From positions 6,069-70,068 of the forward strand of contig MNCI01002529.1 in NCBI GenBank assembly GCA_015680685.1: a stretch of DNA of 64,000 bases. Direction: 5' to 3'. This DNA is from Gnetum montanum (Eukaryota; Plantae; Gnetophyta). The position numbers and the translations under genes are program-made. Position 1 is the first letter of the stretch; each line of letters starts with the position of its first letter. The notes under the pieces were generated by a model. It saw nothing but the letters and a program-made list of their open reading frames with translations. It made no database searches and was not told where the DNA came from. This document shows positions 6,051-47,700 of this stretch, one piece after another.

Positions 6051-6615
6051 TGAACTGAGAAAATGGAGTTATATTCCCTTTTTCTGCCTGGGCTAAATAA
6101 TTTTTGCCTGTGTTAAAATGCATAAAATAATTGCCAAGGGAAACCATTGTGAATAATTATGAAACCAATTACTACCGTAACATGTACCCTCCCCTATTGT
6201 TCAACCCTCCCCTTACTGCTAAATTTAGGCTTCATCGTTGCTGGAGAGCTTCATAGTTTCATAGTTTCATCTACTTCCAGGTTCAACACCACCATGTTCC
6301 CATGCAAGACGTTCGAACATCTAGTTTGGAAGACTAACATCTTATTCACAGGAGGCTCATTTTCGAAGCCAATAAAATGCATTCAAAAAAGCCTTTCAAA
6401 TGGCGGTAAAAAACGCCTCCATGTTGAATTTCAACCATGGTTGAACCGTTAGCGACAGAAGCGTGCAAAATGAAAACAGCATATCTGAGCATGGAAGAGA
6501 TGCCGGGACTTTCAAACTTTTTTTTCTTTTCCGTTTCGGAAAGGTAGAACCCAGAATATTGGTGCACTGCAAACATCAACCTCCTGCTGCTGCTCCTTTT
6601 TTCTGGGATTGAATC

Positions 6616-6768
6616 ATGACTGAAACACAGGCAGAAGCGGCATCATTCTCTTCTAGTTTCGCCAAAAATTTGGATGAAGACAATGTGAGACCACTGCAGA
6701 GGATATTGTCTGGTGCAGGGGCTGCCGTTTTCTCGGCAGTTATATTCAATCCTCTTGATGTACTCAAG
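6616..6768 (+). CDS. MTM1: MTM1-like exon 1 (MTETQ...NPLDVLK)
   Basis: ATG at 6616, 51 codons, donor AAG|GTTTGA. The start codon is the least certain part. Confidence 0.85.
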
Positions 6769-12700: not shown

Positions 12701-15700
12701 GATCGTTGTCTTCTCACTTGGAGCTAGGGAAGTGCAAAACGTATGGTTTAACTCTTAGTGAGACATATGATTAGATGATGTGATTGGCTCTAAGTGTTCT
12801 ATCGGTAAACATGGTGAAAATGAATATAAATCCTATTACTAAAAACAAAGAAAATGTAAAGCTATTCTATCCTACTGGCGATAAGTATTCGGTCCTGGCT
12901 TTCTGTACACACCTTAGGCTACTATAATTGTTATTGGGATTACTAAGTAACTCAACTACTGAGTTGTTAGCACTTGTCAACTATTGCATCCGTTCTCATG
13001 GGAGGAGTTGCGGTGGGCTTGAAATCCATGTAGTCCAACAAGGCCGAAAGACTGGATGGATGGTTGATTGAAATTTTTAGGGAGTATGAGGATCTCGTGG
13101 GATCCAATTTGCTGGATGCATACAATAGTATGCTCACTTGGCAGTAGGTTAGGGGGAAAATCATTTGCTCAAGGGTGTTGCTGCTTTTCAAGGTCCCAAA
13201 CTTGATAGCTCCAAGGCATTTTCGACCCATCAAGGTCTGCAACACGTTGCTACATGTTTTCTCCAAATTGTTGGTTGGATGCCTTGTGCCACTAATGGGG
13301 AAGTTGGTTGGGGAGCATCAGGTGGGGTTCGTTAAGGGTTAGTACCTGCAAGACCAGGTGTTGCTCTTGCAAGAGATCTTACACTCAGTTAAGATTGCTA
13401 GATTTTGAGACATGTGCATCAAACTGAACATAACCAAGGCTATGACATTGTGAGTTGGACGGCACTTAGGATGGTGATGATGGAAAAGGGGTTCGATGCA
13501 AAGTTTGTCAATCTTTGCATTCAAATGCAACGAAGTGGCAGGTATTCCCTTGACATTGATGGGAGGCTATGTGGGTTCGTGAGAACAAGATGTGGACTGA
13601 GGCAAGGGGATCCATTGTCACTGCTCCTGTTTATCATGGTCATGGACTTGTTCAAAGGCTATTGCCTTGACGAAGGTGTTCAAGTTCTGCAGGTTGCTGG
13701 AGTGCATAGTGTGGTAGCCCATTACGTGGATGATATGATGGTGTTTTCTAGGGCTGTGGTGCCATAGGCTGTGGCCTTGTTATTGGCAATGGAGAGGATG
13801 TAGCGGGAGGTAGGCCTAGAAGTCAACAAAGGAAAATCAGCCATTTATTGCACCCACATGGAGGGAAGGGTGTAGACCAACATTATATAGACGTTGGGCA
13901 TCCTACTAGGCCAAGCGCATGACACTTATCTAGGAATGCCTATTTTTGATTGGAATAGGCAGAGGACTTGGCAGGGACTGATAAAGCAGGTTTAGCAGTG
14001 GACCACACTTTGGACTAGCTACTTTCTGTCTAGGAAAGGGAAGATGGTATTGGCTGTGATGATATTGATGGCAATTGCCTGGTTTATAGTGTCCATGGCA
14101 ACACCTTCGGCCATGGTGGTGCAAAGAATTGATAGCATTGTGAGGGAGTTCGTGTGGTCAGGGGGTAAAGGGGGTAGGAAGATGCACTTGGTGTCATGGA
14201 TGGTAACAATGTGGCCCAAACTAGCGAGGGGCATTGGTATTCTGGGGCTTCGAGACAAGATGGCTTTGGGCACACACCATCTACTGAATAGGTACATGGC
14301 ATAGGTTGAGGGGGTAGCACCATGGGTGCAGATGCTACGGTAGAAATATTAGTGATGGGAGGTTCATCGGGAGTGCTCCCAAGTCTGGAAGAATTTCTGC
14401 TGCCATGCTGTTATGGTGGAGTAGCTCGGATTATTGGCGTAGTACCCAAAGGAACTGGTTAAATTTTGATACCTACAGGTAGAGGGTTGGGCAGCAATTT
14501 GGAAGGGTCGTTTCCCTGAAAAGGTCACGATGTTTGGATGGTTGTTGAAACACGAGGCATTCCCAATGAGGGCCACATTGAGAGAGAGGGGGATTAGGTT
14601 GGAAGTTAGTTGTCCACGCTGCTAGGAGGTGCCTGAAACATTGCATCATCTCATTTTTGGGCGTAGGTTCTCTCAAGAGGTGTGGCTGGTTGCAAATATC
14701 TCCCCCAGCGCAAGTTTCCATAGGGACTTTTTGCACCTTGCTACATTGTGGGTCCTGTGGAAATGTAGGAACTCTCTGATTTTTCGGGGACAACCACTTC
14801 CTACGGCCATGGCAGTGGTCAGAGAAGCATGTGGGCTATGGAAGGAGGCCACAAAGGCCATGGAGCAACACCTACTTTTTGAACCATCATGAACATAATT
14901 CTCTAAATTGCCTAAATTATGGGTGTTGGTTGCACGGATGGGGTGGGTGGAGATGCTCAAGTGCATGGAGGGAGAGCCGAACCTGCCTACTTAGCAGTTC
15001 TACGATAATTGGGTGGGAGACACTACACAATATAGGGGTAGGAGGATTGAAATCATAGTGCAAATGTTGGTTGTTTACGTTGGGGGTGGAGGACATAGGG
15101 GAATAATGGCCTTGGTTGTGAGGGCATAGGATGACGTGAGGGAGTTTTTCACAGGACACATTCCCAAGACTGCTAGGGGGGCACATTTGGAAGTTTGGAC
15201 TACGAGGGGTCTGGAGAGATGCAGCGCTCTTGGTGGAGTAGTATTTTGTGCAATCCAGGTACCCCCACAAACTGGTGGGGTGCATTTCACTTTTCTCAAG
15301 CACCTTTGGTAGGGCTCCCCAGTAAACCTGCCCCATTTTTTTGGGAATCCCTTCGTAGGAGGCGATTGGGGTGGCACCCTAGGGTGATCCTCGCACTATG
15401 GTGTGGGGGTGTGTCGACTATTCACCTGGTGCCAATGATTGTTTACCAAAGAAGGCAGCGCCAAGGGTAGTCTACCAGGGCACAAGTGCAGCATAATCGG
15501 GGCCCCAAGGTGGAGGGCATAGGGGCGGAAATGTCCATAGCCATGGAGGAATGGCTATTGGAAGAGTGCTGCTTGGCGGCCGAGCAGGCACAGCTGGAGG
15601 AGCAGGTGCAGTGGTAGCTCAAGTGGGAGAACATGCTGCAGGAGGCCTGAAGAGCAGCAAATGAGTTGTGCCTATAGGACCTCAGGTGCATGGAGGTGGT

Positions 15701-18700
15701 GATATTAGAGCACTGGACAGGATTGGCACAGCTTAGAGTAGAGAACCAATGACTGGCACTTGGGCTGGGATTGACAGGACAACAGATTGTAGTTGGCACA
15801 GATGCCTTAGAGACCTTGGCTGCGGCTGAGAGTCTGGGGTTTGGGTCGTAGTTTGTCGAGATTGTGGGATGCAGTAGTTTGGGGCTAGACGTGGGTAGGT
15901 AGTGCTATGGCCCCGTCGATAAGGGAGGGGGTGTCCTAGGCATTCCGTGGTGCATGTTGCATGTATGTCCCCTACTATTGGAAATAGGGGTTGAATATAT
16001 GGGGTGATGGTACTAGGGTTGTGTGAGAGGGCTACGCTGTGCAGGTGCGTAGGTGATCATGTGGTACGTTGCAGGTGACCGTTGTGTCACGTGGATGGGT
16101 TGTGTCGACTCCAGTCGATGATCTTTGTGTACATTTGTACATTATTTTTCTAGAATAAAATCGCTCGATTGTTTTCCAAAAAAGAGAAAAAAAACTCAAC
16201 TACTAAGCAAATCAAGTAAAGTCACTACTGGGTTACCAAACAACTACACTTTATGCTCAAAACCAATCGTACGTATTTTGCCCATATTAATAAACAATGG
16301 AATAGTAAATGACTTAAGAAGTGTAAATGACAAAGTAAAAGTAAAAGACATAGGAGTATAAATCTATTCTATGTAAGATGTTGCAATGATGAAGAACAAT
16401 CTCAATTTTTATTAGTGGTAATGAATTGTGTCTAGGAACAATTCACTTGAATAAAAATGTTGTACAACTATAATATGCCACATAGTAGGCATTCACAAAT
16501 AACTCTAAATTCACGAAAATAAATTGCAATACTTTTGCTAAAGGTTGGCAAAAAATGTTCCTTTGATACGATGGTAGACTCGTATTTATAGGCATGACTA
16601 TGGCCCACTACATCATATATTGAGCTACAATATCATATCTATGATATTGTAGTCGTTTACATCAAATGTTTTATTAATCTTCAACTTCTACAAATATCCT
16701 AAAATATTCCTTATATGGACATACATGAAATGATGCTTTAGAATCCATTATCCATTCATCAGATTGACTAAACTCACTTCTACACAAAGTATTATCAAGA
16801 GTGATCAAAGTTACACCAACTTCACCATTACTTTGATTACTTGATGATTCTTGGGAAGTAGCCTCCTTTGCTTTGCTCCTTTTCTCCTAATCATGATAGT
16901 TTCTTTTCAAATGACTAGGCTTGTGAAAATACCAACAACCTCTCTCTTTGCTTTGTGAACATGGCCTACTCTTGCTTTTGGCATCATCTCTGCTTCGAGT
17001 TGCTTGCTGTTGTGATCTACCTCGATTTTCAATGTTTAAAGCCTCTTTTCTAGATGATGTTGATTGCATAGATGCCTTTCTGTTTTTAGCATCCAACAAG
17101 GCTACCACACTAGATTTTGCCACAATAGTGCCAAGATCCAGTGTTGCCTATGCTACACTAATTGTTGTAACTATTGTTTCCCAACTCTTTGGAAGAGACC
17201 AACAACAAGGATTTAACCTCATCATCCAATACTACTTGCAGTGCTTTCAGTCCTAGTATAAGGAATCCACCATGGTGCTCTGGGTGAGCACTTATAGTCA
17301 AAGATCCATTCATCATATCTTTTTCCTACTATCACGTGCGTAATCACACTTATCAAATAAAGCTCCTACGCTATTGTACGATGCTATTGTATACTAATAT
17401 ATCCACATATATTTGTGGTATGTAGAGATTTCATGTTTCAGTGTGAAAAACAATTGTTAACTTCAAAGAGGTGCTAAGCCATTGTATTATTGGCCTTCAT
17501 CTTGAACTTGAATAATATTCTCATTTCATAAATTTTGTTTGCCCTTGATGGCTATTCATACAACTGATTAACTTTTTCTACAAGCCTTTTGCTATACTCT
17601 TAGCAATTAGTGAGGTTTGATCAAAGAGAGAGCTTTTTGATTCAACTTATCCCACTCTTTTTGGAACATGTTTTGAGGCTTCCTTTTTGCCTCCTCCGTG
17701 ATGGGAGGTTCACATTCTTTCTGATATAGAATATCTGTCATTAGAATTTTCCAAATCTGCTAATACACTACTATCTTTGTCAACCATCTTCAATACACTA
17801 CCAGTAATCTATAGGAAACCTTGCTTTGATACCACTTGTTGTGCTTAAAAATTAGGACTGAAAAATAAATTCACTCATGCAACCATTGACAACAGAAAAT
17901 ATAAGACGAGACAGATTTACATGGGAAAACCCCTCAAGGTGAAAGGAAATAACCACAGGAAAGTAGGCAGATTATTTTCTTCTTGAGAAATGAATTTCTT
18001 GCTTCATCTATTACCTCCCTCCCTCTCCTTCAAATAACCTTCAATCCCATAATTTTAGACATTTAATCAATAGATTAGGCAGTTAAAGATAATGATCAGC
18101 CTAACTGAATATCAGTGACTGATAACTTATTAGTCACATCTCATCAATCTTACTGACTTAAACACAGCAAAGAAGAAACTAATTACAAATTTCTTGATTG
18201 GAGATTAAAGAGAGAGAGAATCAAGGAATAGATTTTAGTTCATGGTTCAACAAGTAGGAAAACCAGAAATTAGATGTTGCACATTAATAATCTTGTTTAA
18301 ACAAACAATTGGCCTGCAAGCTCAATAATCATGAGGAGCAATAACTCATAAATCAAATATTGAAACTCTAATGGAAGGATCAAAACAAGTGCAGCCAACA
18401 TCAATCAACAAACAATGATGAATAATGTTAACAGATAATTTAATAGCTTTTTAAAATATTAGTATAGATACGGTATTAGCTTTTCTGCCTTGGATTTTGC
18501 TTATGCTAATAAATAAATGAATTTTGATTTTGCCAGATCTCAGGTTCAATTTCTTCAGATCAGAAAATTGATAATTATAAGACATTCAACATAATATCCA
18601 TTTTTGTTCTTTCTTTTTGTATTAATAACAGATCATTTCTAATTTACCAGTAATAATTATGTAGTTGTGCTTCTCGTTGCAGCTGCATCCCTTCTTTTGA

Positions 18701-20784: not shown

Positions 20785-23700
20785 GTAACTGTTCTTGTTA
20801 TTCTCAGGCCAAAACAGTGAATGGGTAGTCTTTAATATCATTTCCAGAAAACAGAAAAAAAGAAACAAAGGGAAAATTCTATATGTGACTATTATCATTA
20901 TCATTATTACCATTCCCTATGAAATCAGAAAACAGTGAATAGTAAATAACACCCACACTTCCAGACCATTCAGGACCAGGTTCTCCTCATGTAGGAGGTG
21001 CTTCACTCGCTTCGAAGTTCGGGTTTCCCTAGGCTTTGCCTCAAGCTTGACATTACTAAGGCATACGACACTCTCAGCTGGGAGGCATTGCAGTCCATTA
21101 TGCACCTGAAAGGGTTTGATCAGCAGTTTATCCAGCTGTGCATTCACATGCAGTCCTCGGCCGATTTTTCTTTCGATGTGGGGGGGCGGTTGTGGGGCCT
21201 CTCCTCTCCAGGAAGGGGGCTGAGACAAGGGGACCCGCTCTCACCCCTTCTTTTCATCATCGCCATGGACTTAATGCAGCACTACTGCAGCACATTCAGG
21301 GTGGATGGTTTGGACATCGTCGGGGTGGCATATTGGGCCGAACACTATGCAGATGATACAATGCTGCTCAGTCGGGCGGCGGTCCCACAGGCACGATGCA
21401 TCAACGTTGCTCTGTCCCACCTGGCTACTGAATTAGGGCTGGAGATTAATCGGACCAAATCTTCAGCTCATTTCATTAATGTTGATGAGCAAATTAAAAA
21501 TCGGGTGGTGCAAATCCTGAACATTTTACCCAAGATGGGCAATGACACCTATCTGGGCATCCCCCTCTTTCGGTGGGGGCGAACCATGTCATGGGGACCG
21601 CTATTGGAAAAAATTGAGAGAAGAATGGGCCACTGGGCAAATCGATTCCTGAGCCGCAAAGGATGCCTGCTTGCGGCAACGGGGATCCTCATGGCAATTG
21701 CCCGATTCGTGGTGGCCGTTGCCACCCCCCTAGCGCCATCATCAATGAAATTAACATGCTGGTCCGTAGCTTCATCTGGGAGGGGGGCAATTGGGGGGGG
21801 GCAAGATCCACCTGGTCAGTTGGGAGCGGGTAGTGCACCCCCGGAACGCGGGTGGATTGGGCATCATGTCCTTCGAGGATGAATTGATGCTAGGACAACA
21901 ACGGTTGGTGCTTCAGTTTATGTGCTCACATGGAGAACTGATCGAGTGGATCCACATCATGAATGCAAAATATCTACGTTGGGAGGTGGAAGCGCGGGAT
22001 TCTAGGCCTTGGCAGGCGCTGTGCCGGCATGCTCGTGCAATGCAGATCCGCGGGTGGTTGGGTCTCGAGCCGCGCACCCTGTTAGCCGCCAAGTACTCCC
22101 AAATCGCCGGCTGGCAATAGATTTGGAAGGGTTGGCTACCCGAAAAAATAAATTTTTTTTTCTGGTTGGTTCAATGGGACACGCTACCCGTGCATGCCCT
22201 CCTATGTTGGCGCGGGATCTTACAGCACGACACTTGTCCCACATGCGGCGCGGCGGCAGAGATAGTTCAACACTTTGCGTACAACTGTGTGTGCATGCGC
22301 ACCACATGGCGCGCGACAGCGGTGATCCCTCATGTGCCTCACCGGCGATTCTTGGGCCACACTACTTTTATGGGTAGCGTGGAAAGCAAGGAATCACACT
22401 GTTTTCCTGCAGAAACGGCTCCTGCCCCCCAGCGGTTGGTCCTCTAGGCTCTCCATGCGTGGAAAGAAATCGAGGCGACGATGGGAATCACGCCTACATT
22501 TGAGCTGGACTGTGCCACGTTTCGGGAGGACGAAGAGCTCTGGCAGATGGTGACACAATGCGGCTGGTCTGACCCTTTGCAGTGGCTGGTCGGGGACCCA
22601 GATCTGGCAGACGACGCATTCTTCTCCAACTGGGCCGACGACCGCACCTTTTTTTGAGGGCGCGAGATTCTGATCATCGAGTCCTCAATCGCCAGCTGTT
22701 TGGGGGCCCAGATCGTTGGGGAGGTCATTCTGCCGTCCACCCGCGGCTTGCAGGACGTAGAAATGTTCTTCGACGGGCTCGTACCTCGAATCAGGAGCTG
22801 ACAGGTACCTAGATCTTCCCTGCCCTGTCTCTAGGCCCGGGTAGCAGATTTGGTGGACAGATTTTTTGTCCAGTCTGGCAACGGTTGCAAGCTCCAGGGC
22901 CTACACTTTGCTTTTCTGCGTTGTCTGAAGTTAGGTTGCCAGGTCAACCTCCCCTGCTTTTTTCTGAAGGCCTTCCTGCTCAAATGACGTGGCCGCCATT
23001 CTGGGCTAATTCTTGCCTTGTGGTAGGGGGTAGAGGGGGGGCAGCACCCGTTGTCTTCTGCCCCCCCGCGGGGGTCCCTTGGATTGCCCCCCTGTTGCAA
23101 GCCCCTAGGGCCCTGCAGTCTCGCCCGGCCAAGGGAGCCACTGGTCCCTTTGGGCTTCAACCTTCACGCGGGGCCGGTGGACCCAACGGGAGCGGCACCC
23201 CCTGCTCGCCTTGACAGACTAGTTTCCCCCCCACTGGAGACCTTTGGCCATAGGAGTTGGCACGAAGAGCTATGGCAAGCCATGCAGAGGGCTGCAGACG
23301 AGGCGCGGGAGGCTGAGCGGCGGGAGTGGGAAGCCAAATGGCATGAAGCCCTTGCGTAGGCCCAGGCCGACCTGGAAGCCCAAGTTTCGGAACGAGAACA
23401 TGAGCAGGTGAGGCAGCAGGACCTCATGGTCGAGGCTGCCAAGGCCCGCTTAATTGACGAAATTCGGGCCCAAGTGTGGGAAGAGTTGATTCAGGAGGAC
23501 TCGGCCCAGAGACAACGTCAGCAGGTGGAGCAGGCGAAGCAGGAGCGGCTTCAAGAGGAGGAGGATCAACGACAGCGGCAGCTCGATCGGGCTCACGAGT
23601 ACAACGCCCATCAATGGCTAAGAGGGGGGCGGGTCCTTGGCATCAGCTGTGAGAGCTCCTGGGGTGAGCTTAGGCACCATATCCGCCGGACCTCGGTGCG

Positions 23701-26700
23701 CTTCCATCCGGATGCAGGTGCCTTGCAGGCGGATCGGAATTGGCGGGAGTCGGCCATGCCGGGTATCTAGCAGGCGGCCAGTTTCATGGACACAGAAGAC
23801 CACCGGAACACTCTGGATCTTCTCCATGAGCTAGAGCGCCCTCACTGTGCCGTTGACAGCTTTCGACGAACCCCTAGGGGGGGGGGGTTTTGGCCCCGGG
23901 TCATGGGTGATGCTTACCCCTCCCCCCGGGCCGGTGCTGCTTCTGTGTCCCCCTGCCCTCCCTCCCCACGCTGTCGATCATTGCTCCCCCGTTTCCTTGC
24001 TGGTCTGGTTCCCCCATTGTTTTTTGGGGGGGCCTCTTCCTTTTTTGGGTGGGGGGTGGGGGGAGGGGGGGCGCCCCCTTGTGGGGGGGGTGCACACCCC
24101 CCNNNNNNNNNNNNNNNNNNNNNNNNNNNNNNNNNNNNNNNNNNNNNNNNNNNNNNNNNNNNNNNNNNNNNNNNNNNNNNNNNNNNNNNNNNNNNNNNNN
24201 NNNNNNNNNNNNNNNNNNNNNNNNNNNNNNNNNNNNNNNNNNNNNNNNNNNNNNNNNNNNNNNNNNNNNNNNNNNNNNNNNNNNNNNNNNNNNNNNNNNN
24301 NNNNNNNNNNNNNNNNNNNNNNNNNNNNNNNNNNNNNNNNNNNNNNNNNNNNNNNNNNNNNNNNNNNNNNNNNNNNNNNNNNNNNNNNNNNNNNNNNNNN
24401 NNNNNNNNNNNNNAAAAAAATTTAGAAATCTAATTTTTGGGAGCAGACAAGTGGCAAAATTCCATGTGCTCATGTGCAATATGGAAAGGAGAAACAACAA
24501 TAAAATCTGATATACGCTAAGTTTGAACACCATGATGGATTAACATGGTTCCAAACTTTGACATCTTTGTTAATAAAGTTTCCAGCCTGTAATGTTTTCA
24601 CATTGAGAGAAATGTAGGCTTTGAACAAGGGACCATTTAACAATGATTTGAGATATGACAACTCTCTTAGAAACCTCTCAAAATTGATCTAAAAATGATC
24701 AACAAAACATAACATGTGCACTTAACAAAAGACACCAAAAATCCTAAATATGCATAGCTTTATTTTTAATATTAAAATGAGTACTCAATGGACACTTTGG
24801 CCATCCAGCTGCGCTACACCAAGTTTTTCCAACCCTACAACATCTTGTAGCCCACACAAGAGATCACCAGCCTTGGATAGAATGATGTGGGGCATTTCTT
24901 GTATAAAACAAAAATGATCACAAAAACAAGAAATACCAAGTGCACATGACACAAGAAAATGCTAACTCATAAGCCCAAAACATGCATACCAAAAATCAAA
25001 TCCAAGACACATGAGAGACTTCATGCATGACTCACACTTCATAAGAAATCCCACATGCCCTCATGAAATAATGCTCACTTTTCCAAGCCAATACAACTTC
25101 AAACACCTACTAAAAATTTTGTACAAGGGTTTGAAATATACAACTTTAAAGTTGAACTTGACCAATTTTGGGAGCAAGAAGATACCTCAAAGTTGGGTTG
25201 TTGTCCAGCTAATAGCCTCAAAAAATCAGCTTCAAATTGCAGATTCAAGGTGATGCCAAAAACTTCTCACAAAATCAGAGAAAACGGTCCCTTGAATCAG
25301 CCAAACAGTCCCCAAAAATCAGATCCAAAGCCTCCAACAGCAGCAAGAAAATCCACCTTCCAAGAGCCCACAAGAACACTCAAGACAGCCGAAGAGATGG
25401 CCAAGAACAAGCAAGGAACAACCACTCTTCCTCTCCTCTCCTCCACTCCTCACCCCTCCAACTAGCATAGTCTCCCCTTTCTTGGCCAGAAGTGAAAATG
25501 AGAGCAAAACACCCCCTTGATTTATAGGATGGAGGAGACCCTAGGGCTTTGATAAAGACTTATGCACAAAAGTTTATACAATGGACAAGGAGTAGACAAT
25601 CCATTTTTCAAAAATCCTTTTTTTTATTCATGACATCATTGCTACTTGACTTGGACAAGCAAGCTCTCATAAGGAAGTGGACATGTGAAATTGACAACAC
25701 TCAAGAGAGTCACATGGCCCCTATTAAATGAGTCATTGGTCCCTTTTCCAGCCATTAATATGAACTGGACAATTTTCATATATAAATAAAATAGATTACT
25801 TTATAAATTTCATTCTTCTTAGAATGGATGATACTGCGAATGTTCTCTCATTTTGATGTATTTAATAAAATTGATTTTAAAAGTAGATATCATCATATTA
25901 AAAGTGAAGAGGAGGTGAATGGAAAACTTGTTTTAAAATCCTTGATGCTTTCCATTTAAATGGCTTGTGATGTCATTTGTGTTAACCAATGCTTTTACAT
26001 TTTGTGGTTGATGTAGTGTGTATTGAAGGAATTAATTGGAATATGTTGCATTGTGCTTTTTTAATAATATTTTGCTTTTTAGCAAGAATAAATATGAGCA
26101 CTTTGCATATTTGACTTTGGCTTTCAAAAAACCTAATGAAAACCAACTAATTATAATCGTCAAGCAGTGTTAATTCTTGATAGGTGATGTCAGCTACTTC
26201 GGTTGTGTGGCATAAAAGATTGACATATGGATGGCACCTTCAAAGGTGAACTGAATCTTGGAGTGGCCAACTCCAATGAGTATTCATGATATCATAAGCT
26301 TCTTTGGACTAGCAAGTTTCTATCGTCAATTTATTTGAAGATGTGTGGTTATAGGTTTTCAATGCTCAGTTTGTTGAAGAAGGATTGATTGTTTCATTGA
26401 TTGAAACCAAGGAATGATAGTTTTGAAGAGTTGAAAAAGAATTGACAGCAAACTGGCGTTGGCCTTGTCTGAGCTTTGAAACCTTTAGAGGAGTGTTCTT
26501 TAGGATTTTACTGAACTAGCTATTAGAGGACTGTTGTTCAGGATCGAGAGTCAATTGCTTACTTTTCTGAAAAATTGAATGACAACATGAAGAAATATAG
26601 TGTTTATGTGAAAGAATTATATGTAATTTTGCAAGCACTTATATACTGGAGGGCACTATCTTCTTTCTAAAGAATTTTTGTTGCTAACTAATCACGAAGT

Positions 26701-29700
26701 ACTTAATCTTCCTTTGCAAGTTATGAATATTCATATCTGATTTGAACTATGAGTGTTAACCTAGCTGTAAGACTCTTGACATGGAAACCACAGGTAACAG
26801 GTTCAATTCTAATGGGCAATGCTATGCTATGGAAAATTTTGTACAAGGAATTTCTGATGTTGCTGTGGCTCAACAGATCCAGAGGGTCTTAGTAGATGTA
26901 ATTAAATACATTTTGTTTGAGTTTCATAAATCCATTCTTATCAAGAAATGAGCTGGAGATCAGTTCATTTGAGGCTTGGAACATATCTTACACCGTCAGG
27001 GTTTTAAGGCCACCGTTGGCTTTTACTTAATATACACATAAGTCAGCTACTACCTCTCACAAGATCTAAATATTCCATAAAATAATCATGATGTTTGTTT
27101 TCAAGTTCTATCGTTGCTTTTATAATGTGCTAATGAAGTGAATATTACCGTGTTCTTCTCAGATGGAAAAGTAATTTGATAGTTTATGTATGTCAAATTG
27201 CACTACGAATTAACAAGCATTAACGTTGTTGCAATTTTACTGTCATAGCTTTCATAGGATCTGCCTTTTGATTATTTTAGTAGAACTGGGGTTTCTCACT
27301 AGGGAATCATTCTAGCATACCCAGAGCTGACACAATTTAGACAGGAACTAAGTGTTCAGACTTCAGATGCAGTAATTTTTTTGGCGTGCTCTTACATTTA
27401 ATGGTAAATCAAGAACTGTACTTTGATGTTGTTTATAATAGCATTAGTGAAGTTATTCTTGTTCTGTTTGACTGAGTCAGGTTGGTATATATATGCCTTC
27501 TTATGATATTATACGGAATTTTCTTGAGGAATTTTCATATGTGAAGGCACCTCAGTTAGCAGCATATTCTCCGTTAATTGCAGCTTCTATAGCACGAGCA
27601 TTGGCATGTATAGTCTGTTCTCCTATTGAACTGGCAAAGACTAGAATGCAGGTTAGCAGCCATTGTTTACTTTCTCGATTCTGTTTTGTTTGATGAAGGC
27701 TGATATTTTCAGGTTATGTTTCACATAAATTTGGCAAATTTTTAAAGATGATGTAATTATGAAAATAATTTTATCCTAAACTTTTGTTGAATTTCTGCTT
27801 GATGATTGTTGGTGCCTAAGACCTTTCAAACTTCAAAATTTTTAACTTGTCGATTGTACCCTCTAGCTTATCAATTTACAGTAAGTAATAGTTTCAAGTC
27901 ATCACTGGATCTATCATCAGCCATAGTTTGATGTATTACAAGAGTTGAGAGGATTTGAATATGTTCAGAGTTGTTAAAGGTCATAAGTTGCTAATTTTGC
28001 TTTAGATATTCAAGTACAATTATTTTTTTTTCAATATTAAAATCAGGATAACTTCTATTATAAAGTGAAATTTCACGTATATTGCTATTTATTGCTGTGA
28101 ATTGTATTGCAATCCCAACTTATATAAACAACGTTAATTATATTTATTCCTTTTATCATAATGTTCATTGTTTGTTGTATACTGCTATGAAGGCTGAGAA
28201 GGTTATTCACTTTGGTAACAAGCCTCGAGGAATGTGGAACACTTTAGCTGATATTTGGTTTTCTGTAAGACGTTCATCGACACAAGCAAATGGTGAGCTT
28301 ATTTCTTTTTGAAAGGAGTAAAGGGCTGTGTTGCTGAAACTTTTATTTTGGAAGAGGTCAGGTTTCAGACCTAGATCTTTTGTCACTCTGTAATCTAAAA
28401 TGTGACTTCCAGTTATTTATTCCATTTCATCTTCTATGTTTTAAAGCCATCCTAAGGTTTTCTTAGGTTATTTTCAAGAAGAAGCTGTCTTTAACTTACG
28501 TTGAACATGACCAAATCATCATTCAAAAATCTGTTAAGTTAGAGTATAGCGGAATAGTTTATTACTAATAAGCATTGTTGAACTAATTATGCAACTATGG
28601 AGAACAAAAAATTAAAATGCATTTATTAAATTTTTTAAAAAGTGCAATCCAAACGTGAAAGGAGATAATTTTTCCTGGCAAAACATAACCCATCAAGGAA
28701 CTTTGCAATGGCATGATGAGGACATATGGAAAAAAGCAATTAGCCAAAGCTGATAAAACAAAGAAGGTACTCAGCTGAAGAAGTTATCTCAGTAATAAAA
28801 CATGAGCTGAAAGATTCACACAAAGATGTGAAAACAAAAGAAGAAAAGGAACAAATTGCAAAAAAGCAATTCAAAACTGGTCACTCACGGAAGTGAACAT
28901 ACACTGCACTTTTTTTCGAGGTAAGGTTGGGGATATATTATAATACAAAATATACAAAGTCCAGGCCAAAAAAGAGAAAAGGCGGGGTGCGGAGGGATTT
29001 ATCCCTTTCTGGGGGAAGTAACTCCCGTAACAGCTGCAAAGAAGAGGGAGGAATCTCCTTGTGCATAGAGACTTACAACTAAAAAAGACAAGTCATACAA
29101 CAACATTTGAAACAACATATTGGCTCCATCTCATGTCCCTGATCTTCCTGAAAACCGAAAAACCTCATAGATGAGCCTTTGACAAATTTACAAAAGATAG
29201 AGACCATTATGGAAACAACAAATAAATACAATGACATCTAGGCCTCAACTCCTACCGAGTCCCAGTCAATGTGACCCTCGCCTCCTTGGAATTGATGAAA
29301 TATGCCACCTGTTTGAAAACATGGTATTTCTCTTTCTTCTTTTTCTTCTCTGTGTCACTGAGGCCAATTCCCTTGTCTAGATGGCAGGTGAAAGAGACAC
29401 GTCGGATGTAGGCATGAAGATCATCTTAGGAAGCGTAGCACTTAATCTTCATTATCATGTATGGGCACATCTTGTTGGTCTGATAGTCTTTGACATTAGC
29501 TGCATGTTACTTTTGCAGGTGCCTCCTCATTTTTTTCTATTCCTGACATTCAACTTCATGTCTCCTGATTTCCTCCTGCTTCTTCAGGTGAGTCTCTTCC
29601 ACCACCTGTAAGAGCTCTACCTTGATGCTCTTCTGCAACTCATGCTCAATTCTGAAATGAAATTCCATCTGTTGTCTCCCATCTCACCCTAGTCTCTTCC

Positions 29701-32700
29701 TCCTAGATTTGTTGCCCTTTTTTTTGGCCTCCCATTTGAGGTGGATCCATATCCTCTGTGGCAATCATGAGATCAGCCTCTGCTTGTTGCTTCAACTGTT
29801 GTTTGATTTCTGCAACCCATTGCTGAACCTCATGAGTGAGCTTGTTCTTTGCCTGCATATCCAAGAATTCTCCTAGTTTTTCCAACTCTGCTCTACTTGT
29901 GGTTGAGACTAGGTGGCCATATTTGCTCTTTGTTGATCCACCAAGCTGGATGACAAATCCCCATTGTCTACATGCAAGCCCTAAGGCCCCATCTCATCCT
30001 TCGTGTGCACCTCTGTTAGGGCTTGTACTAATAGCAAAGGCCATGGAAGTCCACATCATGGGCTCACCATTCATAAATAGTGGTAAAATCTCAGACTTCC
30101 ACGGTGCAGACAAAATAATCAACTTAGAATGTTTGCTAGTTTGTTACTTTTCTAGGATAGCCCCAAAATTTTTTGGTAAGTTAGATAGTCTCCAAAGTTG
30201 AAGGCATTGCATAAGAGCAAAGTGCATTTCCTGCAACTTATGAGCATTCTCAGACTGCAAAAAAAAATTTCTCAACCAATTTTGCCACTCGCTGCCAAAA
30301 AAGAGGGAATTTGGATCTCGACACCTAGCCTTTAATAGTCCGTGCAACAAAGCCTTGAAAGAAGGGAGTGGCTTTGTGTAAACTGCACCTAGATGGAAGG
30401 ACTACGTCACTGGAGCAAGGGATTCCCAGGAAGTCCCCAATGGCCTCTTTGCTTTGGAGAATGTAGGTCTTGTGAAAGCAAGTTTCATCCCTGTGCCATC
30501 TCAAAAATAATTAGGTGCATTTAACATACATTGCATTATGTAGGTTCAGAGTTGGGACCTTTCACCCGCTAACGAGGATGCCTTGATGCGGTTGGGACTT
30601 GTGGGGGGCCCAGGGGTTTGGGTCCGTTGTCGGTGTGGGGTCAGCTGCCCTCGCCTACGCTATACCTTTGTATAGTTGTTCTTTTTGGGAATAAATTTCG
30701 CTTGATTTTTTCCAAAAAGAAAAGAAAAGAAAAACATACATTGCATTATGTAGTGTCAAGAGTTGAAGTTGTGAAGCAGTAGCTTAACATAATTGAACTA
30801 AAGTTGCAAAGTACTAGCCTAGTTCAGACTTTGGAGAACTTTGTAGTATAATAGAAGATGGTGAAACCAAGCTTTAGTACACATTGACAAATGAGCTACT
30901 TGGGAACCTTTGAGCTTAGTTAAGATGTAGCCTTTAAGTTGCATCACTAAACAATTGGTTACATTATGAAGGATTTGAGCTAGTCAATTTAGCCAAAACC
31001 TCTAATGAACCCCGAAGAAGTTAACAATCTCATAATACAAATTGTGTTATGGATTTGATTAACAATTGCAATATTCTTTTGTTATGAAATTGGTTAATAA
31101 AGAAATTTATTGTTTTAATAAAAATTGTGAACATAATTCTAATCCTATGCAAAGGTTTACTAAGTAAACACTCTTAATCATTCTAGCCTTGTCTCAACAA
31201 AATGGGGTTGGCTACATTATTTAACTTTTTCTATCCATCTCTATTAAGAGATAGATTTTTATCTATTTGCAATTTCTTTAAATAATCTTCAATTGTTTTT
31301 TCCATGTCTTTTTTAACAAGTAAACATTGGTTTATGGAACTTGGATTCATCTATGGATGAAAAATTGATATGGTATTAGAACCAAAGGATTTGATGAGCC
31401 CCGAGTCCCACGGTCATTTCGCTTCGAAGCCGCTTGGTTAGCTAAGCCGTGGTTGAGGTCGTTGGTGGAGGACATTTGGGCAGATTACCGGCCTAGCCAA
31501 GGTGATCCCCGGAATTTCCTTAAGGAGGCCTTGCTTTGTCTGAAGTGGGCCATTCGAGCACTCCCAGTGCATGATAAGTCCTCCTTTTGGATGGGTTAGA
31601 GGACTCTCCGAGATCAGCTTGGTCAGATCCAGGCCAGGCAGGAAGCTGGGGAGGACTTACACGAGGAGGAACAACACACGTTACGTCAGCTTCAATCCCT
31701 TGACTTGGAGGAGGAGACATATTGGTGGCAACGCTCCTGGGTCAGATGGATCTGGGAAGGGGACAGGCAAACAAGATTTTTCTTTGCCATGACTAAGACA
31801 CGTGGGGGGAGCCAACCACGTTGTCTTTGCAATCAGGATGGGGAGACTATTGATGATCCGCAGAAAATTGCAAATGAACTGATGCAGTACTAGGGGAGGA
31901 TCTGGGCCAAACGTCCCACTAGGCCCATCTCGGTCCACGTGGCGTGAGTGTTGAACGAGAGGGACAACATGCGGCTGCTGGCCCCTTTCTTGTGGCAGGA
32001 ACTCACTGCCACTATCAACAGCATGCCAGGAGGAAAGGCACCTGGTCCTGACGGCTGGAGCCTTGAGTTCTTTAAGACGTTCATGGATATTGTGGGACCC
32101 AATATCCTAGATGCGTTCAATCTCATGTTGGCCAAGAGGCAGGTCCGGAGGGAACTCAACTGCTCCTGCATTGTGTGCATCCCGAAACAATCAGATGCAC
32201 ACTGCCCTAAACACTTCCGCACTATCGGTGTATGCAATGTACTCATTCGACTCTTCTCCAAACTGCTGGTGCATAGGCTTGTGGGGATCAACCAGGCGGG
32301 CTTCGTGTAGGGCCGGACCATTCAGGACTAGGTTCTCCTCATGCAGGAGGTGCTTCACTCGCTTCGAAGTTCAGGTTCCCTGGGCTTTGCCTCAAGCTTG
32401 ACATTACCAAAGCATACGACACACTCAGCTGGGAGGCCCTGAAGTCCATTATGCAACTGAAAGGTTTTGATCAATAGTTCATCTAGCTGTGTATTCACAT
32501 GCAGTATTCGGCCGGTTTCTCTTTCGACGTGGGGGGTGGTTGTGGGGTCTCTCCTCTCCAGGAAGGGGGCTGCGACAGGGGGACCCACTCTCGCCCCTTC
32601 TTTTCATCATCGCCATAGACTTAATGCAAAATTATTGCAGCACATTCGAGGTGGATGGTTTGGACATTGCCGGGGTGGCATGTTGGGTTGAACGCTATGC

Positions 32701-35700
32701 GGATGATACAATGTTGCTTAGTCGGGCAATGGTCCCACAAGCACGGTGCATCAACATTGCTCTGTCTCGTCTGGCAGCTGAGTTGGGGCTGGAGATTAAT
32801 CGGACCAAATCTTCAGCTCATTTCATTAATGTTGATGAGCAGATTAAAAGCTGGGTGGTGCAAATCTTGAATATCCTACCCAGGACGGGCAATGACATTT
32901 ATCTGGGCATTCCACTCTACCGATGGGGGTAGAACATGTCGTGGGGGCCACTGTTGGAGAAAGTTGAGAGAAGAATGGGCCATTGGGAAAATCGTTTCCT
33001 GAGCCGCAAAGGACGATTGCTTGTGGCAACGGGGATCCTCATGGTGATCGCCCGATTCGTGGCGGCCGTTGCCACCCCCCCTAACGCCATCATCAATAAA
33101 ATTAACATGCTGGTCCGTAGCTTCATTTGGAAGCGGGGCAAAGGGTGGGGGCAAAATCCACCTAGTCAATTGGGAGCGAGTAGCGTGCCCCTGCAACGCG
33201 GGGGGATTGGGCATCACATCCTTCGAAGATGAACTGATGTTGGGACAGCAATGGTTGGTGGTTCGGTTTATGCGCCCGCATGGGGAACCGATTCAGTGGA
33301 TCCGCATCATGTGTGCAAAGTATCAACGTTGAGAGGCAGGGGTGCAAGATTCTAGGCCCTGGCAAGCGCTATGTCGGCACATGCATGCGATGCAGGCCCA
33401 AGGGTGGTTGGGCCTCAAGTCGCGTGCCCTGCTGACTGCAAAGTACCCCCAAATCGTTGGCTGGTAGCAGATTTGGAAGGGGTGGCTGCCCGAGAAAATA
33501 AAGATCTTCCTCTGGCTGGTACGGATGGACGTGCTACCTGTGCGAGATCTCCTGTGTCGGCACGGGATCATGCAAAACGACACCTGTCCCAGATGCGGCG
33601 CCGCGCCAAAGATAGTCCAGCACTTCATTTACGATTGTGCATGCATGCGTGCCACGTGGCACGTGGCGGCGGTGACCCCCCCGATGTGCCTCACCGGTGA
33701 TTCTTGGGCCACGCTACTTTTATGGGTAGTGTGGAAAGCAAGAAATCACACTGTTTTTCTGCAGGAACGGCTCACCCCCCGGGTTGGTTCTCCAAGCTCT
33801 TTGTGCATGGAAAGAAATCGAGGCGGCGATGGGAATCATGCCAACATTTGAGCTAGAATGCGCTGCGTTTTAGGATGACGAGGAACTCTGGCAGATGGTG
33901 ACACAGTGCGGCTGGTGTGACCCTCTGCAGCGGCTGGTCGGGGACCTAGATTTAGCAAATGATGCTTTCTTTTCCAATTGGGCTGACGACCAGACCTTTT
34001 TTCGAGGGCACAAGATTCTTGTCACCGAATCCTCAATTGCCAGCTGTCTGGGGGTCCAAATCACCGGTGAGGTCATCCTACCGTCTATCCGTGGCCTGTA
34101 GGATGCAAAACTATTTTTCGACTGGCCCGTGCCACGTACAAGGAGCTGACAGGTGCCCCGATCTTCTCTGCCCCATCTCTGGGCCCGGGTAGCAGATTTG
34201 GTGGACAAATGTTTTGTCTAGTCTGGCAACGGTTCCAAGCTTCAGGGCCGACATTTTGCATTTCTGCGTTGTTTGAAATTAGGTCGCCAGGTCAACCTCC
34301 CCCGCTTTTTCTTGGAGGCCCTCCTGCTCAAGCGACATGACCGCCATTCTGGGTTAATTCTGGCCTTGTGGCGGGGGGTAGAGGGGGGGCAACACCTGTC
34401 GTCTTCTACCCCCTCCTCCCCCCCTTGTGGGGCCCCCCCTGGATAGCCCCCTGCTGCTGCCCCCCAGTCCCTACGGTCTCGCCTAGCCAAGGTAGTTGCT
34501 GGTCCCTGTGGGCTTCAACCTTTACGCGGGGCCGACGGACCCAACGGGAGCGGCACCCCCCCGCTTGCCTCGACAGACTGGTTTCCCCCCTGCCGAAAAC
34601 CTTCGGCCACAAGAACTGGCATGAAGAGTTGCGGCAGGCCACGCAGAGGGCCGTAGACGAGGTGCATGAGGCTGAGCGACGAGAGTGGGAGGCTAAGTGG
34701 CATGAAGCCCTTGCATAGGCCTGGGCCGACTTGGAGGCCCAGTTTTCTGAGCGGGAGTAGGAGCGGGTGAGGCAGCAGGACCTCATGGCTGAGGCTGCAA
34801 GGGCCTGGTTAATTGACGAAATTTGGGCCCAAGTGCAGGAAGAACTGAATCAGGAGGACGCGACCCAAAGAGAGCGTGAGCAGGCAGAGCGGGTGGAGCA
34901 GGAATGGCTTTAGGAGGAGGAGGAACAACAGCAACGGCAGCTCGATCGAGCTCACGAGCACAATGCCCGACAATGGCTCAGAGGGGGGCAGTGCCTGTAA
35001 CTCATCCTTGGCATTAGTTGTGAGAGCTCCTGGGGTGAGCTCAGGCACCATATCCGCCGAACCTTGGTGTGTTTTGATCCTAATTGGGGCACCTCGCTGA
35101 CGGATTGGAACAGGTGGGAGTCGGCCATGCAGGGTATCCAACAGGCGGCCAGTTTCATGGACATCGAAGACTACCAGAACACCTTGGATCTTCTCCATGA
35201 GCTAGAGCGCCCTCATTGCGGCTGTCGACGAACCCCTAGGGGGGGGGGGGGGGGNNNNNNNNNNNNNNNNNNNNNNNNNNNNNNNNNNNNNNNNNNNNNN
35301 NNNNNNNNNNNNNNNNNNNNNNNNNNNNNNNNNNNNNNNNNNNNNNNNNNNNNNNNNNCTCGATTTTTCTTGGGTCTGTTTCCTGGTCATAACATGACTA
35401 ATAGGGTGCTGAATATTTTGTGACTTAGGGGTTTTTTGCCCTCCATTGAGGGCCATTGCTGATGGCCCACGATTTGTAATCTCATGTACTATAGTCTTTC
35501 TTTCTCAGTAATATAATCCTGATTATTTTCTCAAAAAAGAAAAGAAAAGAAAAAAGATTTGATGAGAAGTTGTGTTGCGGTGGCAAATGGAGGATCAGGA
35601 GAGCGAGTGGATTATGGACAAGGGTGACCTGGGAGCCTTCAGGTGGGAATTGCAACAATAGATTGGTGTCTCCTCGTTTTTGCATAATGGATCACAAGGG

Positions 35701-44700: not shown

Positions 44701-47700
44701 CAGAGCTTCAAGAAAATGGCACCAACTTGTCTAAAGAGGAGCGAGAGCTGTTGGGAGAGCTACAAGAGTTGGATAGATAGGAGGAAGGTTATTGGCGGTA
44801 GTGGGCTTGTGTTTCTTGGTTACACAAAGGGGATTGGAATATGTGGTTCTTTTTTGCCACGGCCAAAGGTCGTGGGGCAACGAAAAAGAAGCTCCAGCAT
44901 ATGTTTGCGGGGGAGGCAGGGGAAGGACCGGGAAGAGGGATGCAAGTGGTGGAGGCTATGCAGGTGTATTGGGAGAACATTTGGAGGGCAAGGGCAATGG
45001 CAAAGATCTCTATTCTAGTGCAATGGGTCTTGACTGACGAGGACAACCATGGCTTGAGGCAACCATTTTCTAGGATGGAGCTGGATGCAACTATGAAATC
45101 GATGTAGGCTAGTAAGGTGCTAGGGCTTGGTGGGTGGCCCATTGAATTTTTCTGGGAGTTTAATGATATTATGGGGGCTAATTTGTTGGATGCTTTTAAT
45201 AGCATGCTTTATTGCCAGTAGCTGCGTAAAGAGCTCAATTGCTTGAGTATTGTATTGCTGCCAAAAGTGTCAATCCTTCTTTATTGGCACATTTCAAGCC
45301 CATTGGTGTTGTCAAGGTTATTTTCCAAGCTCATTGTTCATTGTTTGGTGCCGTTAATGCAGAAGTTGGTGGGAGTGGGGTTTGTTAAAGGTTGCTTCTT
45401 GCAAGACCAGGTCCTCCTACTTCAAGAGATTATGCACTCTTTGCGGAGGTCAAGGTTCCTCGGGATGGCTGTAAAGTTGGATATCACCAAAGCCTATGAT
45501 ATAGTGAGTTAGATTGCACTGAGAGATTATGCTTCTGAAAGGTTTTGACCTTGCGTTTGTGACTCTTTGCATTCAGATGCAAAGTTCATGAAGATACTCA
45601 TTTGACATTCATGGGAGGTTGTGGGGTTTCAAGGTGTCGGGAAGGGGGCTGAGACAAGGTGACCCATTGTCCCCCTTACTATTCCTCTTGGTTATGGATA
45701 TGCTGCAAGGCTACTATTTGGCTAAAGGGATATAAGGGTTGAATGTTGCTGGTGTTCACTATCTTGTTGCTCACTACACTGATGACACCATCATTTTTTC
45801 CTAGGTGGCGGTTCCTTACGCTAAGGTGCTCAAGAAGGGCCTGGATAGGATGGAGATGGAGCTAGGCCGTGAAATCAATAAGGGGAAGTTTGCCATTCAC
45901 TTGATTAATATGACAATGTTGGTTNNNNNNNNNNNNNNNNNNNNNNNNNNNGTGTGGGCGTGGGTGGTGGGGGTGGCACGGGGAAGGATTGTGTAGCTCA
46001 TGGGGATTTTGCTAGGTTGGTTGGAGGACTCATGTTTGGGGATGCCGATCTTTGACTGGTAGTTTAAGAGAGCGTGGTCAGGGTTCGTTGAGAGATTGCG
46101 TGCAAAGATGACTCATTGGAGTAACAATTTCTTAACAAGAAAAGGGAAGATGTGTCTGGCCTCAACAATGCTTTTGGCTATGGCTAGGTTTGTGGCGTCC
46201 ATGGCTAGCCCACCGGAAGGGGTTATTCAAAAGATTGACCAGATCATACGGCAGTTTGTCTAGTTGGGTGGCAAGGCAGGAAGGAAGCTCCACTTGGTAT
46301 GCTAGGAGCTGATGATGAGACTAAGAATGATAGGGGGAATTAGGCTGTTGTCCTTCAGGGATGAGGTTAAGTTGGGCTTACAACTTCTAGTTAATAGGAT
46401 GTTGGGATAGGAGGAGGGGTAGGCACTGTGGGTGAGGCTGCTATAGTAAAAATATCGCAGGTGGGAGGTTGAAGCATGGAGCTCATATTTATGGAAGAAT
46501 ATATGCAGGCATGCTACAAAGATGGAGGCTAAGGTGCTATTGGCACAACATCCATTAGAGGTGATTAAGGCCATGTACCCACTAGAGGTGGGGTGGAATG
46601 ATGTCTGGTAGGGGAGGCTGTCTGGGAAGCTTAAGGCTTTCGGGTGGCTCATCAGGCATAAAGTGTTGCTAGTGTGGGATTTATTAAGAGTCCGAGGGCT
46701 GAATATAAATGTTGTTTTCCCTCTCTGTTCTGCAACCTCAGAGATGCTTGAACATTTTATGTATGGTTGCAAGTTTATGTAGGAGGTCTGGAGGGAGGTT
46801 GGGATTGGACCACCGATAAGCATAAGTGGTGATTCTAAGGCGTTGGCTATGTTGTGGGCAAGATGGAAGAGTGAAATCATTTGGTGTTTCATGGGCAAAG
46901 ACTACTGGTGCTGATTTTTGTGGCTAGAGCTGGGCTGCACTTGTGGACTGAAGTGACGAACCAGGATTGATTTTTGAGCTTGGGGTTCCGCTGAGCTTTG
47001 GTAGATGCTAAGGAGGGTGGGATGGGTTGATATGCTATAGTGAATTGAGGGGGAGCTAGGGCTGTCCACGAAGGGCTTCTATGATAACTAGGTCGAGGAA
47101 GAAACATGGTTTTGGGGCAAAAGGATTAAGATGATAAAGGCGACGTTGGGGGAGGTCCTGGGGGTCTTGGCGGAGGGGGAGGTCATCACCCCGATGCCCT
47201 GCAATCAAGACTACACCGCTGAATTTTTCCATGGAGTGGGCACATTTGGAAAAAAAGGGTTGACGATGGTGTGGTAGAGTGCAACGATGGTTGGTGGATC
47301 AGTTTTTTGTGTAGACAGGCTACCCCCACAAGCTTTTGGGTGTGCATTTTATTTTTTTGAGGTGCTTGAGGCATGGAATTAGGGTTAATATGCCACGGTA
47401 TTTTTTGGACTCCATGTTGCAGAAGTGGCCTGGGTAGCATTCGAGGGTGATCTTAGTGCTATGGAGGGTTGGGTTAGAGGAGATGCCTAGGTAGTTGCGG
47501 TTGGAGCTAAGACTGGTGTATCAAAGGAGGAGAGGAAGGTTGGCATAGGGGACTATATTGCTCACGGTGGAGCAGCAGGACACGAATGGGGAGGATGTGG
47601 CTCCTTGTGGTACTGACCGGGATGAAGGGTTGGGGCTCTCTAGGGAGACTTTGTGAGGGGGTTTGGAACATGATGCAGGCACTTAGGAGCAACTGGCCGA

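Follow-up and report, generated by a model that had tools for sequence, protein, structure and literature searches.

A diverged J-domain-like module at the 3′ end of a LINE lineage in Gnetum montanum

Can a retrotransposon carry its own means of engaging the Hsp70 chaperones of its host? J-domains use their HPD loop and their basic helix II to dock on Hsp70 where its nucleotide-binding domain meets the linker, and docking triggers ATP hydrolysis, which locks Hsp70 on a nearby client. The question is raised by a stretch of 64,000 nucleotides (nt) of Gnetum montanum contig MNCI01002529.1 (the window, to which all positions below refer), in which a preliminary description had read a J-domain at the 3′ end of a family of long interspersed nuclear elements (LINEs). 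The reading that we consider probable after our analysis is that a plant L1-type LINE lineage encodes at its 3′ end a long helix and, after it, a J-domain that has diverged, and that this domain would dock host Hsp70 in an active element.

Results

The module lies near the 3′ end of L1-type LINE copies

The window is AT-rich, at about 30-38% G+C, and contains islands whose G+C content is 50-63%, two of which are copies of one LINE family, here called copy 2 and copy 3 (82.2% identity over 2955 aligned nt; 20961-23887 versus 32313-35249). Together with a third copy on the opposite strand, they contain the following features.

20961-24420, plus strand: copy 2, an L1-type LINE, 5′-truncated and decayed, recognised by homology to copy 3 and by its RVT_1 and zf-RVT matches
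23231-23611, plus strand: long helix of copy 2, rich in E/Q/R/A and coiled-coil-like, from its composition and AlphaFold2 (AF2)
23633-23818, plus strand: J-domain-like module of copy 2, about 62 residues, from Pfam, a J-domain model and shuffles
31399-35555, plus strand: copy 3, a LINE of the same family, 5′-truncated, delimited by 11-bp target-site duplications and an A-rich tail
35001-35189, plus strand: J-like module of copy 3, free of stops, at the same place as that of copy 2
28911-30293, minus strand: 3′ part of a diverged antisense LINE, with an accessory region (30174-30293), a helix-rich tail, a J-like module and an A-run at about 28911-28917
29270-29461, minus strand: J-like module of the antisense copy, with one in-frame stop, from a local J-domain model and shuffles

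Copy 2 runs from a reverse transcriptase (RT; RVT_1 match, E 5.3e-15) through a plant-LINE zf-RVT region (E 6.5e-11), an accessory region, the long helix and the J-like module into a G/C-rich 3′ untranslated region (UTR), which is followed by an assembly gap (24103-24413) and an A-run (24414-24420); no clear target-site duplication was found in its flanks. Copy 3 starts in the stretch immediately upstream of the RT, ends in an A-rich tail (35533-35555), and has on either side the 11-bp duplication GATTTGATGAG (31388-31398 and 35556-35566), which has no other occurrence in the window. The features that mark an L1-clade plant LINE are thus present, namely an RT followed by zf-RVT and, in copy 3, an A-rich 3′ end, a target-site duplication and 5′ truncation. 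The closest relatives of the RT among 5.8 billion proteins were angiosperm L1-type RTs, at just 30-35% identity; LINE proteins of the host itself are absent from that collection. The module-bearing copies in the window are 5′-truncated and without APE-type endonuclease and ORF1 parts, and all three are dead relics.

The helix stretch of copy 2 spans 127 codons, 69% of which encode E, Q, R, K, A or D, and a single-sequence AlphaFold model of the piece at 23360-23767 predicted residues 2-89 to form one helix, with a block-mean predicted local distance difference test (pLDDT) score of 92-98; a TAG at 23357, present in copy 3 too, breaks the helix in copy 2. After this helix, copy 2 reads just as the preliminary description had quoted it, with the HPD motif (CATCCGGAT) at 23705-23713; the module is interrupted by a TAG in frame at 23768. 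Copy 3 likewise has the module at the position described for it, upstream of the A-rich tail (by 344 nt) and inside the duplications. Judged from the residues, the putative helix II would be basic in both, with four K/R and two H against one acidic residue in copy 2 and three K/R and two H against one in copy 3.

The third copy was found by tblastn: the copy 2 tail matched 29653 to 29234 (E 7.1e-4, 24% identity over 140 residues), and the copy 2 accessory piece matched 30293 to 30174, just upstream on the minus strand (E 7e-8). The A-run of this antisense copy begins 353 nt past its module. The DNA is 46% identical to that of copy 2, with substitutions of all kinds, which rules out a deaminated twin of the same subfamily and leads us to regard the antisense copy as a separate lineage.

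The frame was under purifying selection

Because G+C-rich DNA yields long open frames by chance, an open reading frame (ORF) alone carries no weight here, and we turned to the differences between copies 2 and 3. These fall at codon positions 1, 2 and 3 in the numbers 32, 27 and 53. The ratio of non-synonymous to synonymous substitution rates (dN/dS) comes to 0.08 upstream of the TAG at 23357, to 0.25 in the part of the helix that follows this TAG and to 0.30 in the module, where 15 synonymous changes on 50.5 sites compare with 19 non-synonymous changes on 180.5. This pattern indicates that the frame was under purifying selection in the past.

An alternative would be that the region is non-coding 3′ UTR and that the frame is open by accident in DNA of 60% G+C, in which stops are rare in all frames. 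In keeping with this, 22-24 kb is covered by a large number of ORFs that overlap one another, in several frames of either strand, and the frame continues free of stops into the G-rich UTR. Yet accidental openness would explain neither the excess of third-position differences and the in-frame dN/dS of 0.08-0.30 nor the protein similarity to the antisense copy, which persists at 46% DNA identity, and we consider a non-coding origin of the frame highly improbable.

In copy 2, a single frame leads from zf-RVT (21770) to the module, with nine in-frame stops between 21770 and 23899. Seven of these are private to copy 2, and copy 3 has CAG, CAA, CGA, TGG or CGG in their place. The other two are common to both copies (TGA at 22799-22801 and 34147-34149; TAG at 23357-23359 and 34716-34718) and lie amid flanks with dN/dS below 0.3. 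These shared stops may reflect parallel decay at mutable codons or true ORF boundaries, and the module could accordingly be either the C terminus of ORF2 or a small separate downstream ORF. As the preliminary description had held, the module belongs to the element, a conclusion supported by its location inside the copy 3 duplications, its occurrence at the same place in three copies, its like distance from the A-tail in copy 3 and the antisense copy (344 and 353 nt), its continuity with the zf-RVT frame in copy 2 and its dN/dS of 0.30.

The module shows statistical kinship to J-domains

The only Pfam match of a 53-residue piece of copy 2 was to the DnaJ family PF00226 (14.2 bits, E 0.049), over profile positions 5-33 and in the correct register; the score is lowered because the stop splits the domain. 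We then used a profile of the window's own three module copies (alignment A2). Against PDB sequences (E up to 10), 12 of its 14 matches were J proteins, including DNAJB12 (best, E 0.019), dnj-12, SEC63, DNAJC8 and Sis1. Against a library of 1.84 billion proteins, three matches fell below E 0.001, and the top two were J-type: a 114-residue protein aligned over profile positions 2-63 (E 5.2e-5), which itself scores 85 bits with Pfam DnaJ, and a J-like protein (E 6.4e-5) that scores 21 bits. The third was a repeat protein aligned in short pieces. No LINE protein with this tail was found in the library, and two metagenome scans for relatives of the tail (one of proteins, one with a 23-nt exact pattern) were blank. 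When A2 was aligned by hhalign with 30 DnaJ proteins, the match had a P value of 2.8e-5 and a probability of 74% and covered 61 columns, beginning at LG and closing with the last D, with one 3-residue gap. In the ESM Atlas, the copy 2 piece drew only leads that scored below 0.9; DnaJ, at 0.83, came first among those with a name. Copy 3 gave no usable match.

We also built a local J-domain model from 119 DnaJ proteins and applied it to pieces of the window and to the copies read through with X at stops. Over 1487 six-frame pieces of the window, the copy 2 piece ranked first with 14.9 bits, the next piece reaching 7.4. The read-through copies scored 16.9 bits (copy 2), 9.1 bits (antisense copy; p 8e-5) and 1.8 bits (copy 3) in one register, and these scores were reached by none of 5000 shuffles for copy 2, six of 5000 for copy 3 and none of 5000 for the antisense copy. 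The part before the motif was matched by 5/5000 shuffles in copy 2 and 2/5000 in copy 3. In the antisense copy, where the motif reads HLD (29375-29383) and is followed by KG, 13/5000 shuffles reached the score of the half after HLD and 275/5000 that of the half before it. We regard this copy as the most independent witness to the J-domain because it was found by homology to the tail.

Two matches from these searches deserve mention. P0002, a 157-residue protein matched in the library, has a J-like stretch with the pattern SSW-PEIRRH-RRSS-HPD-GG, which is closer to the LINE module than canonical DnaJ is (Pfam DnaJ, 21 bits). A weak match of the tail profile at 6349-6642 on the minus strand (E 0.0047, 13.6 bits) is driven by a run of lysines similar to the one in the antisense copy; it was set aside as probably due to chance, although it is possibly a very old relic.

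Several observations weigh against the J-domain reading. The score of copy 2 (14.2 bits), the best from these decayed copies, is half the curated cut-off of PF00226 (the gathering score, 27.8 bits). Neither 84 residues of copy 3 nor 57 residues of the antisense copy had any Pfam match at E up to 10, and phmmer searches of PDB sequences with the copy 3 and antisense pieces singly returned nothing relevant. The motif is complete in only one of the three copies in the window, the site in copy 3 (35076-35084) reading DPN where copy 2 has HPD, and in copies 2 and 3 the part after the HPD site, where helices III-IV would lie, scored no better than shuffles. AF2 modelled the copy 3 module poorly (pLDDT 59.9), with helices at 11-23, 33-51 and 55-69; in this low-confidence model they would sit at the places expected of helices II-IV. 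The first 20 Foldseek rows were all J-domain entries, yet with E values of 0.10-0.64, and VIA-align, which considers geometry only, gave its highest ranks to generic helical bundles, whose Z reached 7.5, with J-domains below them at Z 4.1-4.8; a wide VIA-align search gave generic helical matches only. The structure models of the module are, in sum, of low confidence and not diagnostic. The stops common to copies 2 and 3, with the ambiguity in ORF structure that they bring, count against the reading of the element as well. Finally, the E values overstate the surprise because the stretch was chosen for its J-like look.

These observations bear directly on the alternative that the module has another role, such as protein or nucleic-acid binding, as a helical domain conserved at the C terminus in this LINE lineage, and that its likeness to helices I-II and HPD arose by chance or convergence. 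The sub-threshold Pfam score, the J signal missing beyond HPD in these two plus-strand copies, the generic structure matches, the absence of HPD from two of the three copies and the selection of the stretch for its appearance would all be expected of such a domain. Less readily explained would be that two J-type proteins head 1.84 billion, at E about 5e-5, that the hhalign P value of 2.8e-5 extends across the full domain length, and that a diverged antisense copy independently falls in the same register, unmatched by any of 5000 shuffles and with H-x-D-K-G. We therefore consider another role for the domain unlikely, though it is the most serious of the alternatives.

Kinship to bona fide J-domains over the length of the domain was thus found at the profile level, by hhalign and in the library, and is weakened by the prior selection of the stretch. 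The four-helix and HPD spacing that the preliminary description had seen holds in the gapped 61-column hhalign alignment and fails in the part of copies 2 and 3 after HPD, which is at shuffle level. Its assignment of the module to the J-domains fares similarly: hhalign, the library and the shuffles lend it moderate significance, whereas the Pfam cut-off, the weak structure matches and an HPD complete in one copy of three speak against it. Overall, we conclude from these comparisons of sequence that J-domain kinship of the module is moderately supported, not proven, and that genuine descent from a J-domain is quite likely.

The module marks a sub-lineage

A distant, strongly G-skewed LINE family is represented in the window by two further copies.

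13405-16130, plus strand: distant LINE copy
45426-48150, plus strand: distant LINE copy, with a 45-nt tandem repeat (2.8 copies, 47800-47923) within its tail frame

Their RT protein is 42-43% identical to that of copy 2. Both have kept the RT, zf-RVT and the accessory region, and in both the J-like tail is absent. Because these two copies with the same core have no module, the module marks a sub-lineage.

Absence of the module from the LINEs at 13.4-16.1 kb and 45.4-48.1 kb implies that it is dispensable for the wider group, as would be expected if it were of J-domain descent but had ceased to engage Hsp70, whether as a passenger or as a degenerate pseudo-J; it would then be a piece of the host that was captured and retained for some other reason. 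Such a fate also fits the strong divergence of the module from canonical J-domains, which has left helices III-IV beyond recognition in copies 2 and 3. Against it, dN/dS in the module is 0.30, the module has been kept across lineages only 24% identical in protein, and, decay notwithstanding, H, P and D each survive in two of the three copies (HPD, DPN and HLD). That the module is such a passenger or pseudo-J is, in our estimation, distinctly improbable.

The accessory region after zf-RVT was recognised in all five LINE copies, and its decayed pieces matched no Pfam family.

22448-23211, plus strand: accessory region of copy 2
33796-34570, plus strand: accessory region of copy 3
30174-30293, minus strand: accessory region of the antisense copy
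15277-15357 and 47291-47425, plus strand: accessory regions of the two distant copies

The 3′ UTRs of copies 2 and 3 (23880-24102 and 35240-35254) open with long G runs and have G/C-rich tracts. Both break at assembly gaps (24103-24413 and 35255-35358, respectively), which suggests DNA that is hard to assemble and possibly forms quadruplexes. Between the antisense copy and copy 3 lies a short G+C-rich fragment with an A/G-rich end (30393-30780, plus strand), which resembles another LINE 3′ end.

Discussion

Our results point to a LINE lineage in which the RT, zf-RVT and an unnamed accessory region lead into a long helix, with a J-like module after it that lies some 340 nt ahead of the A-tail. 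In an active element, the J-domain would dock host cytosolic or nuclear Hsp70 through its HPD loop and basic helix II and trigger ATP hydrolysis, so that Hsp70 would be clamped on a neighbouring client. This client would most plausibly be the large ORF2 protein or its ribonucleoprotein (RNP), whose folding, assembly, transport or remodelling Hsp70 may aid, and the long helix may serve to multimerise or space the module. We infer this contact with Hsp70, and its purpose, from the kinship of the module to J-domains. The preliminary description had raised a possible interference with silencing as a second purpose. That the J-domain reading is right seems probable, although it is not proven. The stronger proposition, that a non-angiosperm-like plant harbours a LINE lineage, active now or until recently, which has a working J-domain and recruits Hsp70 in cis to its ORF2 protein or RNP, we put forward tentatively, as a prospect somewhat short of even.

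The closest known counterpart of the module is the J-domain of DnaJ/Hsp40 proteins (PF00226), especially those of type III, in which only the J-domain is present beside other modules. The likeness lies in a length of about 60-70 residues, an LG[IV]-type start, a basic helix II, in copy 2 an HPD with a small or basic residue after it, two further predicted helices, and the 61 columns aligned by hhalign. The LINE module differs in residing in a retrotransposon, in scoring below the Pfam cut-off, in having no helix III-IV signature in copies 2 and 3, and in the alteration of HPD in two of the three decayed copies.

Among selfish elements, polyomaviruses offer a parallel: their large T and small t antigens carry a J-domain and use host Hsc70 for the replication cycle. 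By analogy, the LINE may likewise be a selfish element with its own J-domain. The two differ in that the viral J-domain is the N-terminal domain of a regulatory protein of a DNA virus, whereas the LINE module is at the 3′ end of a retrotransposon of the kind that has no long terminal repeats (LTRs).

Among plant L1-clade LINEs, extra ORF2 domains have precedent, RNase H reportedly having been acquired in this way. The elements described here resemble such LINEs in having an RT and zf-RVT core with lineage-specific additions after zf-RVT; they differ in that the additions are the accessory region, the long helix and the J-like module, and in an RT that is 30-35% identical to angiosperm L1. The ORF2 proteins of LINEs in general are scarce as well as large, and they fold with difficulty.

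A tie between a LINE ORF2 protein and chaperones of the Hsp70 family is known for human LINE-1, whose ORF2p co-purifies with HSPA8, HSPA1A and HSP90, the first two being named in the table of ORF2 interactors (PMC5821459). Human L1 encodes no J-domain and relies on host factors, whereas in the plant LINE the recruiting module would be built in.

The preliminary description knew of no LINE with a J-domain, and our full-text literature search agrees, having found no LINE or other non-LTR element with one; its coverage was incomplete, and Repbase and Dfam lay outside it. Should the J-likeness prove to be due to chance, the module would still represent a C-terminal domain, conserved and hitherto undescribed, in a plant LINE lineage that branches deeply. 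If the lineage does recruit Hsp70 through a working J-domain, no earlier transposable element would be known to encode a co-chaperone module for Hsp70, and the lineage would be the retrotransposon counterpart of the strategy of the polyomavirus T antigens. A J-domain of its own would add a new domain class to the LINE repertoire. HPD mutants would offer a natural handle on the action of chaperones on ORF2p or the RNP, and a LINE with its own J-domain would show that the supply of chaperones can limit retrotransposition enough for selection to act.

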